DNA from: Nageia nagi
Lineage: Eukaryota > Plantae > Pinophyta
Direction of reading: 5' to 3'
Length of the DNA stretch: 64,000 bases
Assembly: GCA_050084985.1 (NCBI GenBank)
Contig: JBITNC010000001.1
Span: 154,690,001 to 154,754,000 of the forward strand
Part shown: one piece after another, positions 12,401 to 24,149 of the stretch
Position numbering within the stretch: the stretch's first letter is position 1
How the letters are laid out: every line of letters begins with the position of its first letter
Program-made: the position numbers and the translations under genes
Notes under the pieces: model-generated
The model's database searches: none
The model's input: the letters and a program-made list of their open reading frames with translations, nothing else
Told to the model about the DNA's origin: nothing

Positions 12401-14894
12401 GGTTAAGTTCATTTGAAGGCACCCAACATAAGCCTACTCTCCTCCTCTAATATCAAGTTTTGGTCTAATGTATATCAAGGCATACAACACATCCAATTCT
12501 AGTGCACTTGAAGTACCAATTTTGAAGTCACCATTCTCCAATGATGGTAAATAAGGCATAAAGGCTCAAATGCCAATTAAAGATTTGATATTCCTATTTG
12601 ATATTCCTAGACATCAAACACTGATGAAAAGAGAATTTGGACCTAAGAAAACCTTTTTGAATGCAAAATAATGTAGAACTAAAAATACCAAAGTTTCAAA
12701 AGTTTCTAGTTAGTTGGAACTTATCAAAACTCCTAGAAAGTTAAAACTTAGTACAATGTAGGAATATCAAGATTTTGACACTTTTTGATTGACTAGAATT
12801 TACCAGACCTCTAGAAAAATAAAACTTTCAATATCAATTGTACTTCACATGTTGAACTCCACTAGAATTTAGGGAAAATTAAAATTTCTAAAAAAACTAA
12901 AAATTCTTAAAAAAATAAGAGGCCAACTTTGGAGGGTTGTAACTTGTCCCTATTTGAAGGTTGACAAATCACCAGTTGATGAACTCAAGTAGCAGCTTTG
13001 AAGAAGAGAGGTTCACTAACCACTAATTACTAAAATCATCCAAAATAATGCTTTGATAGGATCAAGATAAGATATTTCAAGCTCTTGGAGTGTCAATTTT
13101 AAGTTTCAAACTAAATCTGTACCATTTTAGGTCATACATGTATATATTTCCAAAGTTTAGAGGAGTTGAGACAATAAGGCAAGTTTTGAAGTACAAATTC
13201 AAGCCAAAAACATAAATTTTAAACTTTTAAAGTTAAATTTTGCATATATTTCCATAGTTTGGAGGATGATAACATTATTAGGGTGGATTTTGAGTTCATA
13301 ATTGATCCAAAAATACATAATTCAATGTTTGGAGGGTGATTATATCAATAGGCACCTCCAAAATGCAGATTTTAACTAGTTTTTACGAGGTAACTTACAT
13401 AGCCTATAAATTTTATGCTTCTTAATGAAACCTAGTACTATCACTAATAAAAATGATTAGCATGAAATTATCTATCCAATGGTAATGTTTCATAATAATT
13501 TAAAGAAATATGAATGGGTAAAAACTTGTCTACAAGAAAGAGACTCCATGAGGTGCAAGACCAAGACTAGGAAACAATGCATGTTCAAAGATGTGGTTTT
13601 TGAGTATGTTTTGACAACAAAGTATGGGTAGAAAGGTGTTGAAACATGAATCCAAAATAAAATGAATCACACAAAAAGGATGTATATAATGAAAGATACG
13701 TCCTCCAAAAGCAAATTGGTCTTGTATAAAGGTAGTTTGGGATAACCACAAATACTCTGAATCTAATGCTCAAATTGAAAAACTAAAAAATACCTATATG
13801 GTTAAAATGATACCAATAGATAACAATCATCATGGAAGAGACTCAAATTAATCCTATAAGGATCCTAAAGTGTTTTCTTATGCATATTTGTATTGAAAAA
13901 CAAAAACACACCACAAACCCATAAAGAAAGGAAAGGTCTATGAATATACACCATGAGATGGATAAAATATTCTATGTATTGGCTCAAATACATAATACAA
14001 ATATCATATTCATGGATTACAATTAATGAACTTTTTCACATGCAAAATATGATGGTTCAGTATAATAGAGATATCCATCATCCTCATTCATAACACAAAA
14101 TGCAATAATCTTCATATAACTAAGTGGTGCCACCAGCACTCATAGATCTACTTATGGATAAGGTAGATAACTATATACTACTTAAGGATTAAGGTAGAAA
14201 CTATGGAATCCTTTAAGGAAAGGTATTAAGTCATATAAAGTGGTACTGCTAGCACACATAGGTATTCTTATAGATAAGGTAGATAATTGAGCTTTTATGA
14301 ATATCAATTGAATACACTTTGCTCTCTATAATGCAATAAGCAGAGGAGGCTAAGGTATAAGTAAGTTACAATAGAAGTAGCATGATGTTTCAATAGATAT
14401 GCCTTCAATGATTAAATACAAATCAACCATTTATAGAAGATTCAAACTTCATGAGCTAGGCAAGGGCATGTTGGAGAAGCTTACCAAGGAGTTGTTGGAG
14501 CAGTAATGGCACTTATTGACTTAAGTATTCTAGATGGTGGAGAAAAGGTGCAGTGAAGGTGCTGAAAAGAGTGTTACAAAAATTGAAGTGTTGCAACATC
14601 TAAGGGATGACACACCATGTTTACATGTAGAAGAATTATATCAAACCAAATTTGATCAAATATTATCAGAGGGAGAAGTCAAAAGAAGACATAAATATCT
14701 TCACCAAACAATGTTGTAAGTTACAATTTAAAGGGGAATACTAGGCATATTTTTTATAAAACTCCATGCTCTAAGGTTGATGAATAAAATTCCTTAACCC
14801 AAGTATAAAACATTGCAAAATTACAATACAAGCAAATGAATTTCCTTCATTCTCCTCCTTAGTGTAAAATATTTTATACTCCATAGTTGAATAA

Positions 14895-20279: not shown

Positions 20280-21100
20280 TCCATGGTTTCAAATATTTTA
20301 CCTACGACAAAACTAGATGGTGAGATAAGATGTTGCACTAATTTTAGTAATATGATAATCATATTTTATGATTCAATTTATTTGTTATTTTGAAGTTTAT
20401 GTAGATGATATATTGGCAAAATCCAAGAGGAAGAAGGACTACCTTAGAAATTTGAGAATGATATTTGAAAGATTGAGGATGTATAAATTGGGATCAAAGC
20501 CCCAAAAGTGTGCTATTGAAGTTTTTAGTAATATTAAGCTTCACTTCATTTTTCAAGAATAGGTATTGAAGTAGATCCCAAGTAGGTAAAATCTATTAAA
20601 GACATACCTCCTAGAAATTTAAAAGAACTAACAATTACTTAAGGTAAAGCACTAGAAATTAGAATATTTATTACTTAACTGGATAATAGAACTATGATAG
20701 TATGTTATTTATTGAAAACAAATGTAAAATTTATTTAAGATAAAAAATGACATAAAGACTTTGAAGATATAAAGAATTACCTTTATAATGCTCCCATTTA
20801 AGTTTCTCTTCATGGAGAAAAGTCTCTTTTATTGCATATCTAATTTGAAATCCTTAGATGCAATGCTTGTCTAAAATGATTTGAGTATAGAGAAAGAACA
20901 ATATATTATATTAATAAAATACAAATAGATTATGAGATAAGGTAAACTCTCATTGAGAAATAATATTTTGATGAGAAATTAATACATTATTTATTGAATA
21001 ATATAACTTATATTATTTCTTGTGTTGATACTCTTATATATTTTATGCCTAAACCTCAACTTTTCAGAAAGGAATATGAAATTGGTAATGTTGTTTAGAG
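20280..21100 (+). pseudogene. RT / RNase H relic of the Tat-like element, with an internal deletion
   Basis: YVDD motif in ORF 20368..20562. The segment normally between the DFRDLN-like motif and YVDD (including MPFGL) is missing. Confidence 0.8.
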
Positions 21101-21142
21101 AATTTGAATTAGTAGTATGAAAATGTAATATTTTATTATAGA

Positions 21143-21415
21143 ATGGAAGATCTTAGCAGTAGTAATGGAGGGTGTGTAGCTCAAAGAGAAGAACAAGGGG
21201 AGAAGATATATGAGAATTTGAATTTGTTTGATTCACATAAGGGCTATGGATTCATAACCCTTAATGATGGCAATAAAGATTTGTTTATGCATAAAATATC
21301 CATCATTTCTAGTGGTTACAAATCCATAGTAAAAAGGGATTTTGTAGAATTTTTTATGGAGTAAGATATTGATGATAGAACTAAGGCATAGGATGTAGCA
21401 ATAACAAATGGGGGT
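21143..21415 (+). pseudogene. Cold-shock domain at the N-terminus of the retroposon ORF
   Basis: LFDSHKGYGFITLNDGNKDLFMHKISIISSGYKSIVKRDFVEFFME*DIDDRTKA*DV contains the CSD RNP1 (KGYGFI) and RNP2 (LFMH) motifs and the plant CSP-type ending R.KA.DV. Confidence 0.9.
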
Positions 21416-21699
21416 AGTAGCTTGAAATCCTTGTACAAATATGATAATGGTCATAACATTATAGTGTTTGAAAATGGATGATAGGGAAAAAAAGGTGGGA
21501 ACAAAGTAGCATTTAAAAATGAACAACAAAGAAATAAGGATGTGAGTAGACATTCCCTAGCCCCCTAGGTAGTAAATTCCTTACCTTAGAATAAATATCT
21601 CTTTCACATATGCAATCCTCAAAAGAACAATCAACCAAAATCATGGCCATGTCCACTTATTCAAAACTAATCCATTCAAAAATGAGTTTTTATGTAGGC

Positions 21700-22330
21700 T
21701 TGCATCTAAGGATATCCCTCTCATTCAACTAGATATCTTAGATATTAATAATGAAATAACTCTACTAGAATCCATGATACTAATATGCAAATTCCTTATC
21801 TCCCTTATGTCACTAAAAGTAGTAGAAACATGGGTGACATCCCATTAGAACACTAGGGGGAATACTCCATCAAATACTATGCCTAGAATTTTTACTTCAT
21901 GATTACCTTCACCTTTGAGGAGGATTATGATGTTACATTTCAAAATGGTCCTTGATTTCATGGAAGAATGTATCTATTCATGAAACCATGATATATTACT
22001 TTCAAAGCCAAAAATGAAGCAACAAAAACTGCTCTAGTTTAGGTAAGACTTCTTTCCTTTCCATGTGACTTTTAGAAAGAGTCTACACTCTCTATTATTG
22101 GAAATTTCATAGGATAATACATGAAATCCTAATACCTCATACATGAATGTACAAACCTAACCTATGCATACATCAATATATACATCAACATGTAATCTCC
22201 TCTTTTGGAGAAAATTCAAATTCAAAATAATGGGACTATTAGTACCCAACTCATTGATTATGAAAATATTACTTTTTGATATTAAATATGCAATGAATAT
22301 AAGAATTTTATATGCAAATACCCCAATTCC
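21700..22330 (+). pseudogene. Plant L1 ORF1 core: DUF4283 plus CX2CX4HX4C zinc knuckle, degenerate
   Basis: ILICKF..SLKVVETW, NGP*FHGRMYLFMKP*, ALV*VRLLSFPCDF*, LSIIGNFIG, QLIDYENITF*Y*ICNEYKNFICKYP. Several of the stops fall at conserved Trp positions. Confidence 0.85.
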
Positions 22331-24149
22331 CCTCATGAGGATCCATAATCTTATTTATAACCAACCCTACAACATAACCCACCAATAGTCCAAGAGCATA
22401 GAGAACACCTTACCTAAGCAAATGACTAAAACTTCCTAAAGAAGGAAATCTAAACCATTGAAATCCCCATGCCCATAGCTGATTCAAATTATATTATAGT
22501 TGTAAAAAATCCCAACCAAAGTACATGGGTAAATGAACTATAAGTACAAGAAAAAGTATAAAAACAAAGAATGAAGCAAAGAAGGAAGAGAAGGAAGAAG
22601 AAGACAAAATAGAGAATCAAGAAGAAGAAGATGAAAGAAAAGATGAAAAAAATGAGGATGAAGGGATAATGAAGAAGATAATAAATAATAAGTGGACACA
22701 AAGGAATAAGAGGAAGAAATAAATGAAAAACTAAAAAAATAAATTATAAAGAGCTGCAAACTAAAGTGAAAAGGGTAGGAAACAAAAAATGGTAGTAGTG
22801 AAGGTCTATTCCATAATGGAGGAACTATTAGAAAAATATCTAAATGAAAGTGAAATAAAAATGCTTAAAATGTATGATAAAATCTATGAGAAAATATGGG
22901 AAAATATTTTCAATTATGCATAGGAAAGGAACTAGGAGATGTAAAACATGCTTACTCCTATGAAAAGTACATGATACCAAAGGAAAAAATGTTACCACAC
23001 ATGATAAATAACAAAAGAGGAAATTAAAATAGTGGATAAAGAATAAAAGAGATAACTTGTTTCTTGTTATTGTAGTTGGTATTTATGAGGTTTGTTTATG
23101 TTCAAGGCTAGCAAAATAGAGCAACAAGGAAGGCTTAAGTAGACTAGAATAGGTAGCTTTATTATGGTAATTTGGAGTTTAATTCATATTTTTGTGGATG
23201 CTCAATAATTTTTTAAAATAAAAAACTATAGTTTTATAAAATAATTATTTTTAGTCCTACCCTTTTACTGTATGTAAGTATGTTGTAATAGCATATGATC
23301 TTGATCAGAAAGCCTATGGATGTTCTATATGTGAACAATAGAGTATAATGCAACATGATAGGAAAAATAGGCTTCTTGATTAATAAAATTGAAGGTAAAA
23401 TATTGTAAATGTTTTTGGAGATCCTCTAAAAATCCAAATTTTTTTATTAATAAAAAGTAACCCTGTTAATAAAAGAGAGAATTTGACTTGGTAATGATTT
23501 CATAAAATTCTATCAAAGGGTAATCTATAGTAGATTTCATGGAAACTCATCCTAAATATGATTCTTCCTTGATCAATAAAGAAATTCTAGATGGATTTGC
23601 AAGAAGTACAAACAAGTTATAGGATGTGAAGGTACAAGCAATGAATCAACACTCAATACCCAAAGAAGAGTTCCCAAAGGTATTCATTTGGTTTATAAAA
23701 TATGATGAAAAAATACTTTATTTTAATGGTTCATTATTCAATAGTAAAGGATTATAAATTATTGTTGTGAACCATAATGGTGATTTGATCCCCAATATAT
23801 ATTGAGGTTTGAATCTATGGACAACATGATGAAATATGAAGCCTTGATTTTGGGAATAAAAGCTACAATTCTCCTGAATGTGAAAGAGATAAAGGTGTTT
23901 AAACATTATTAATTAGTTTGCAAGAAAGTGGATGAGGTTTACAACACCAAAAATGAGAAACTACAACAATTTAAGAAGATGGTATCTAACCTCCTTATGT
24001 ATTTGTAGGAGTATGACATTAAAAACATTCATAGAGAAAAAAAAAAGATATGTATATGTAGTGGTGATTTGTAAATATTTTAAAGTTATTCTATTCTAGA
24101 TATCATCAAATAGAAATTTATTTACTTAATCCTTTTATGTCTAGTTTTA

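Follow-up and report, generated by a model that had tools for sequence, protein, structure and literature searches.

Whether a plant L1 element has taken up a host cold-shock domain (CSD) as part of the protein encoded by its first open reading frame (ORF1) is the question raised by a 2.36-kb insert at positions 21115-23475 of a 64-kb window of Nageia nagi DNA (the window being the whole stretch analysed, 64,000 nt of contig JBITNC010000001.1, positions 154,690,001 to 154,754,000 of the forward strand). A sequence-only reading of this DNA had described a retroposon derived from a long interspersed element (LINE) and bounded by a target-site duplication (TSD) of about 18 bp, which starts with a CSD and continues on the same strand into DUF4283, a zinc knuckle and a charged tail. 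It had further proposed that the CSD acts as the N-terminal domain of the ORF1 protein in a propagating family. Our results bear out the bounded insertion, the CSD and the LINE origin, and point to a different relation between the parts. In the likeliest reading, the CSD was carried along as a fragment in a one-off chimera and is not a working domain of the ORF1 protein. We consider it somewhat probable that the insert is a bi- or tripartite chimeric retrocopy, in which an ORF1-only L1 derivative ('half-L1'), a fragment of cold-shock protein (CSP) mRNA and a tRNA-like head were combined in one L1-type retroposition.

The insert splits the pol gene of a long terminal repeat (LTR) retrotransposon and is flanked by AGAGAATTTGAATTAGTA and AGAGAATTTGACTTGGTA, which agree at 16 of 18 positions. 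The duplication measures 18-22 bp, as allowing one 2-nt indel extends it to ATGA. With up to three mismatches, the 18-mer occurs at three sites in the window (both strands, 128 kb) compared with 0.57 expected. Host coding sequence reads '...KLVMLFREFELVV*' as far as 21120 and is taken up again at 23476 as 'REFDLVMIS*NSIKG*SIVDFMETHP'; as the same reading stands on both sides, the duplicated 18-22 bp represent the same host codons. GTTGTTT lies directly 5' of the upstream copy, hence a cut site of TTT|A, and sites of this type are favoured by L1-type endonucleases. The insert ends in ...AATAAAAAGTAACCCTGTTAATAAAAG, with AATAAA 21-26 nt before the end, a run of four A residues left, and a 3' untranslated region (UTR) of ~750 bp. 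A single TSD pair surrounds all of the parts, as in LINE chimeras. The CSP piece has no flanking internal poly(A) and no second TSD pair, and on these grounds we discarded the idea that it is a CSP retrocopy nested in the insert. Within the 64-kb window, neither the insert nor the interrupted part of the host element was found a second time.

G+C content is 24-32% across the whole window and its repeat genes are riddled with stops, so that it looks like a stretch of a large plant-type genome decayed through C>T and G>A changes. Translations were read through with X in place of every stop and of the frameshift. The cold-shock part was clear: the ORF at 21143-21361 matched Pfam PF00313 with E 8.1e-11 (42 bits, cut-off 27) over profile positions 7-50 of 66, and a local profile made from the CSD segments of retrieved proteins matched 21182-21418 with E 2e-17 to 4e-20. 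The match runs beyond two stops into 'DIDDRTKA*DVAITNGG', the plant-CSP extension also present in P0153 ('EGDDGRTKAVDVTGPDG') and P0124. The five-stranded domain of a full plant CSP is incomplete, however. In the local profile residue identity with other CSDs begins only at F (21226), and 'ENLNL' stands where strand beta1 should show G.VKW and the invariant Trp. About 110 nt of insert precede this first conserved residue; the insert therefore does not literally start with a CSD, which does lie in its upstream part. The ORF is open for 73 codons from 21143 through the CSD, and its N-terminal extension is, we think, fortuitous. In the CSD frame, the 51 codons that follow the domain contain 55% RRN codons compared with 29% +/- 9% in the window (top 0.5%), as G>A decay of a Gly/Arg-rich tract would produce. 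Beyond 21565 this share falls to 22%. Pfam searches of pieces of 21392-21565 found no CCHC knuckle, and the CSP-derived part ends within the Gly-rich tract. A CSP zinc knuckle proposed by eye at 21510-21550 was discarded by codon reasoning. The 73-aa CSD ORF as a query gave no candidate with shared words, and the ESM Atlas returned a generic CSD only.

Reference loci for L1 ORF1 were obtained with the degenerate pattern YE.LP.FC..CG, which retrieved 120 plant-derived metagenome contigs. DUF4283 and zf-CCHC_4 were present in 10/10 reference ORF1s checked in Pfam. All six downstream ORFs tested contained a reverse transcriptase (RT); the three longest carried Exo_endo_phos, RVT_1, zf-RVT and RVT_3, one carried endonuclease (EN) and RT, and two RT alone. 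With an EN/RT ORF2 directly downstream, the reference ORFs are true L1 ORF1s, and their domains are consistent with the DUF4283 and zf-CCHC_4 of plant type I L1 ORF1s (PMC5203782). Intact-looking plant L1s in metagenome contigs L035, L042 and L072 (Ga0105139 / ERZ780677 / Ga0182185), host-plant DNA in environmental assemblies, have an ORF1 with DUF4283 and zf-CCHC_4 followed within 17-132 bp by an ORF2 of 1,331-1,389 aa (EN, RT, zf-RVT, RNase H-like).

A profile built from 44 plant L1 ORF1s gave a single match to the six-frame, X-masked window, at 21893-22267 on the + strand (E 1.3e-7), and a composite of frame 0 to 21854, X and frame 2 improved this to E 4.6e-10. Between stops, the pieces of the DUF4283 region are too short for Pfam to score, and it found nothing there. 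Searching the window by tblastn with reference ORF1 and ORF2 came back blank because stops break the high-scoring segment pairs, and profiles were used instead. Stops fall at the conserved Trp codons of the GPW and VWV motifs (TGG>TGA/TAG). The profile alignment reaches 'YE', and after it the CX2CX4HX4C register of a putative zinc knuckle is exact by direct reading, with its ligands now Y, C, N and Y; two of the three mutated ligands changed from Cys to Tyr by G>A, and the third from His to Asn by a transversion. The DUF4283 and the charged tail of the sequence-only reading stood, and its knuckle is probably a remnant with three of four ligands mutated. Reading through the ORF1 body takes at least two changes of frame: frame 1 holds the ATG, frame 0 the stretch 21576-21845, and frame 2 the core, which follows a G5 run at 21856-21860. 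Nothing in the window matched a profile built from four EN/RT ORF2s (best E 6), nor did Pfam find anything in the 3' pieces, which identifies an ORF1-only unit rather than an autonomous L1. Plant L1 ORF1 is the only recognisable element gene within the TSD pair, with the host-type CSD upstream of it, in agreement with a LINE-derived retroposon. The 90-aa N-terminal piece of ORF1 gave no match in a search, and in the ESM Atlas noise only (PCNA/Hus1, recognition below threshold).

The start of ORF1 bears directly on the proposed fusion. Upstream of 'ICKFL', which fits the motif (A/L)(V/I)GK(L/V)L, an ATG stands at a distance of 48 codons (21643, CAAAATCATGGCC); its context is good, as it has A at -3 and G at +4. 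In 34 reference ORF1s this motif follows the first Met by a median of 43 codons (interquartile range 39-57), and the agreement in spacing indicates that ORF1 retains its start codon in the normal place. This ATG is out of frame with the CSD. Between the Gly-rich tract and the ATG lie ~90 nt with stops, and the CSD frame contains three stops between 21566 and 21670. The sequence-only reading had suggested searching plant proteins for CSD and DUF4283 together. No ORF1-like sequence matching the insert was present in the best 150 CSD representatives among 1.84 billion proteins, which were mostly multi-CSD proteins; PF14111 was found in 0/36 proteins of 357-1,137 aa matched by a plant-type CSD query; and no CSD was found in the 120 L1-ORF1 loci (456 kb). 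In the literature searched, DUF4283 and the cold shock domain were not found together, and the papers that mention the cold shock domain along with both ORF1 and non-LTR retrotransposons deal, judging by title and abstract, with other topics. Some plant gene models do join CSD and zf-CCHC to other modules, namely P0151 and P0068 (Ranunculus cassubicifolius) and P0155 and P0157 (Platanthera), none with DUF4283. The partners are a LINE zf-RVT piece (P0151), F-box/LRR modules (orchids) and a PF27679 N-terminal domain. These are probably merged models or recent fusions, and the CSP/zf-RVT combination of P0151 is probably a merged model.

We also probed the 5' end of the insert for a tRNA-like head. 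Position weight matrices (PWMs) for tRNA positions 7-16, covering box A, and for the T-arm were made from 108 real tRNAs. Decay was modelled by letting C>T and G>A occur with probability d, and the scan took in both strands of the window. The combined score of the candidate ranked first of ~128,000 positions at d = 0.3, 0.5 and 0.7, with or without the tRNAs bearing the retrieval pattern. Taken singly, box A ranked 5-18 (d = 0-0.5) or 174-187 (d = 0.7) and the T-arm 5-21 (d = 0.3-0.7). Box A and box B are ~35 nt apart, a tRNA-like spacing as in the heads of short interspersed elements (SINEs). The D-stem (GCTC/GAAC) is kept, as are four of the five pairs of the T-stem; the anticodon arm is ~6 nt short, and CSD homology starts exactly at the end of the T-arm. 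We read 21170-21235 as a putative, decayed tRNA-derived head. A third copy of the TSD 18-mer lies inside the insert at 21211-21228, matching at 15/18 positions with 13 consecutive bases, and overlaps both the T-arm and the place expected for beta1. In the T-arm PWM this copy ranks 5-21 compared with 300-1,255 for the two host copies, and with so much better a score we read it as element sequence. A second tRNA-like head picked by eye at 21551-21630 was ruled out by the PWM test (rank 21%), and an origin of the 96-nt 5' piece (21115-21210) from the host flanks was ruled out by a lack of similarity. The next-best box A/T-arm scores in the window, at 14378-14386 (+) and 7561 (-), are ~17 bits and could be decayed tRNA-derived SINEs or chance.

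A chimeric retrocopy would have arisen as follows. One L1-type event would have pasted a composite RNA into the LTR-retrotransposon pol gene, cutting at TTT|A and duplicating 18-22 bp. The 3' part of this RNA, ~21556-23475 (1,920 nt), would be a complete half-L1 mobilised in trans by the enzymes of full L1s. It would run from a short leader and an ATG of its own through DUF4283, a CCHC knuckle and a charged tail to a 3' UTR with AATAAA, and would lack ORF2. The whole insert less the 55-nt leader and the CSP piece comes to ~1,980 nt. The middle would be ~330 nt (327 nt) of a host CSP mRNA from CSD strand beta2 into the Gly-rich tract, and the 5' end ~120 nt with the tRNA-like box A/T-arm pair. 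The pieces would most likely have been joined at the RNA/cDNA level. In one option, the L1 RT on reaching the 5' end of the half-L1 RNA would switch to a CSP mRNA, landing in its Gly-rich region, and ~330 nt later would switch again onto a tRNA-like RNA. In the other, a read-through (5'-transduced) transcript would be retroposed, for example from an older composite copy. C>T and G>A changes and indels would then have decayed the insert. We infer both a joining of this kind and a low copy number. Published precedents exist for LINE chimeras of two or three parts enclosed by one TSD pair (PMC2104539), and for fusions of L1 to small RNAs and to mRNA fragments as well as 5' transductions (bioRxiv 10.1101/2025.02.02.635956).

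Several observations weigh against this chimera, and many of them bear on the alternative of a genuine non-autonomous L1-derived family whose ORF1 protein acquired a CSD from the host, at its N-terminus, as an RNA-chaperone domain. CSD and DUF4283 core lie on one strand and today share a frame, which is weak evidence given the at least two frame changes in the ORF1 body. The frame-0 stretch at 21576-21845 is free of stops for 90 codons and reaches 22 codons upstream of the ORF1 ATG, where random frames average ~12 codons and stops interrupt the neighbouring true frames at intervals of 16-35 codons. All of the stops that separate the CSD from ORF1 are derivable from CAA, CAG or TGG; together with the open stretch, this makes an ancestral continuous ORF possible. 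The 55-nt leader ahead of the tRNA-like head misfits an RNA polymerase III start and could mean that the source copy already carried the CSP piece, hence at least two copies. The head could have provided such a family with a promoter, and a passage of PMC5203782, citing Heitkam 2014, reports that plant L1s recruit host RNA-binding domains. One copy was examined, that within the 64-kb window. We nevertheless consider such a family quite unlikely, and the N-terminal-domain claim of the sequence-only reading is not borne out: beta1 with its invariant Trp is absent, ORF1 has its canonical ATG out of the CSD frame with stops in between, the window holds no second copy, no related ORFs or proteins were found, and the architecture was missing from the proteins and L1-ORF1 loci searched, as was the domain pairing from the literature searched. 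That a small subfamily of tRNA-headed, ORF1-only L1 derivatives propagated with the host CSD in frame on its ORF1 protein is improbable. A processed pseudogene, its parent being a domesticated, ORF1-like DUF4283 gene of the host with a CSD at the N-terminus or else two neighbouring genes transcribed as one by read-through, would match the mRNA-like unit with an ATG near its 5' end, AATAAA 21-26 nt before its end and a short A tail, and gene models with a CSD plus other modules exist (the Ranunculus P0151 with zf-RVT, the orchid CSD-F-box proteins). With no CSD+DUF4283 protein among the matches and a tRNA-like head in front of the CSD, this origin is very improbable.

Two further explanations concern the 5' end, where the data also count in part against a tripartite chimera. 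ARAGORN found no tRNA and Rfam gave no tRNA match even at E <= 10 on 151 nt, leaving the head with no detectable cloverleaf. If its signal arose by chance, 21121-21555 would be the native 5' end of a CSP mRNA, with a short leader, the ATG at 21143 and a diverged beta1, and the insert would be a bipartite CSP/half-L1 chimera. The failure of the tRNA covariance models is consistent with this, as are the 73 open codons through the CSD, the G at both -3 and +4 of the ATG, and a Ser/Gly-rich N-terminus like those of plant CSPs. However, box A and T-arm give the top combined score in the window at every decay setting, and deriving 'ENLNLF' from the canonical 'G.VKWF' requires, by direct reading, about four transversions in five codons; a native CSP end is thus unlikely. 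The 15/18 resemblance of the T-arm to the TSD is left without explanation by a tripartite chimera. It may in part be coincidence, as E-F-D/E in the host gives a GTTCGA-like core at the codon level. In the last alternative, one endonuclease site would have received two insertions in succession, with a 5'-truncated CSP/half-L1 chimera (21229-23475) at the locus before a 96-nt piece (21115-21210) entered its 5' TSD. The second event would re-duplicate the TSD, in keeping with 18-mers at 21097, 21211 and 23476 where 0.57 are expected in 128 kb, and the first two copies share an A at position 12 where the third has C. As a tRNA T-arm, the middle copy nevertheless scores far better than the host copies (rank 5-21 of 128,000 compared with 300-1,255), and it stands at the right distance from a top-ranked box A, while the 96-nt piece has neither an A tail nor similarity to the flanks, making two insertions improbable.

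If the chimera reading is true, the insert is a plant-side case of the L1 machinery joining a piece of host coding sequence to a half-L1 in one insertion, probably along with a tRNA-like RNA. Such stitching is raw material for exon shuffling and for the birth of SINE/LINE hybrids, and has been documented mainly in mammals and fungi. The insert alone does not show a new ORF1 architecture, and would be important in that respect only if further copies share the junction in frame. Were an in-frame CSD subfamily to be true, its ORF1 protein would be the first of any LINE to have gained a CSD as an extra RNA-chaperone module.

The interrupted element was assigned from its pol gene. Pfam RVT_1 matched with E 3.5e-6 and 27.3 bits, under the Pfam cut-off of 29.6 bits, and the host reading (20368-21096, 23494-23910) passes from a YVDD RT to an RNase H-like stretch. 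Downstream, 'MMKYEALILGIKA' (23784-23909) is similar to the archaeal-type RNase H motif of Tat-lineage Ty3/gypsy elements; Pfam on short pieces gave no confirmation, and on the host pol pieces it returned nothing. The features of the locus are collected in Table 1.

Table 1. Features of the insert and of the host element around it, in window coordinates.
Feature	Position	Strand	Remarks
Reverse transcriptase (YVDD) of host LTR-retrotransposon pol	20368..20559	+	Pfam RVT_1
5' TSD	21097..21114, possibly to 21120	+	TTT ahead of TSD, target TTT|A; host codons REFELV duplicated
5' leader, origin unassigned	21115..21169	+	No significant similarity to host flanks; contains ATG at 21143, fortuitous or native
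Candidate tRNA-derived head	21170..21235	+	Box A TGTAGCTCA (T8 = 21177); D-arm GCTC/GAAC; T-arm GAGAA-TTTGAAT-TTGTT at 21212-21228
Cold-shock domain fragment	21226..21418	+	beta2 to end plus plant-type DDGRTKA.DV extension; two in-frame stops; beta1 absent
Decayed Gly/Arg-rich CSP tract	21413..21565	+	CSD frame; RRN codons; zinc knuckle absent; Pfam nothing in pieces
Linker or 5' leader of ORF1 unit	21566..21642	+	RRN codon share falls to 22%
L1 ORF1 remnant	21643..22345	+	ATG 21643 in frame 1; N-terminal third in frame 0 to ~21856; DUF4283 core in frame 2; at least 10 stops and at least 2 frameshifts
Putative zf-CCHC_4 remnant	22280-22321	+	Direct reading
Purine-rich, K/E-rich tail	22537..22719	+	Charged in two frames; frame ambiguous
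3' UTR-like region	22720..23475	+	EN/RT remnant absent; two AATAAA (23449-23454, 23468-23473); terminal AAAAG
3' TSD	23476..23493, possibly to 23497	+	Matches 5' copy

Plant CSPs of the AtCSP/GRP2 and WCSP1 type consist of a CSD, a Gly-rich region and CCHC knuckles. The insert shares with those compared (P0068, P0153) the DDGRTKA.DV...GG extension followed by a Gly-rich tract, visible here as RRN codons, but lacks beta1 and all of the zinc knuckles, and is a fragment rather than a gene. As in the heads of tRNA-derived SINEs, a box A/T-arm (box B) pair with ~35 nt spacing stands near the 5' end of the retroposed unit, whereas the missing cloverleaf, the ~55 nt ahead of the pair and a protein-coding body of ~2.2 kb set the insert apart. 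Mammals have HAL1 ('half-L1') elements, which are non-autonomous and contain ORF1 only (Smit 1999; Bao and Jurka 2010). Like these, the insert keeps an L1 ORF1 and 3' region without ORF2, would depend on L1 enzymes in trans and is TSD-bounded; its ORF1 is of plant type I (DUF4283 and zf-CCHC_4) rather than Transposase_22, and it is known here from one copy. Compared with plant L1 type I ORF1 proteins (PMC5203782), the order and spacing of the domains and the distance from the start codon are alike, and the stops lie where GPW and VWV have their conserved Trp, but no ORF2 follows, and at least 10 stops and at least two frameshifts have accumulated. The closest parallels are the template-switch chimeras of LINEs (U6/L1 and mRNA/L1; MGL of Magnaporthe; PMC2104539; bioRxiv 10.1101/2025.02.02.635956). 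The insert differs from these in its plant-like host, in a middle piece of CSP coding sequence, in a 3' partner that is an ORF1-only derivative rather than a 5'-truncated full LINE, and in that the switching is presumed. In both, copies of different transcripts follow one another head to tail, on the same strand and within a single TSD pair, with the LINE-derived part on the 3' side and the poly(A) signal in that 3' part only.

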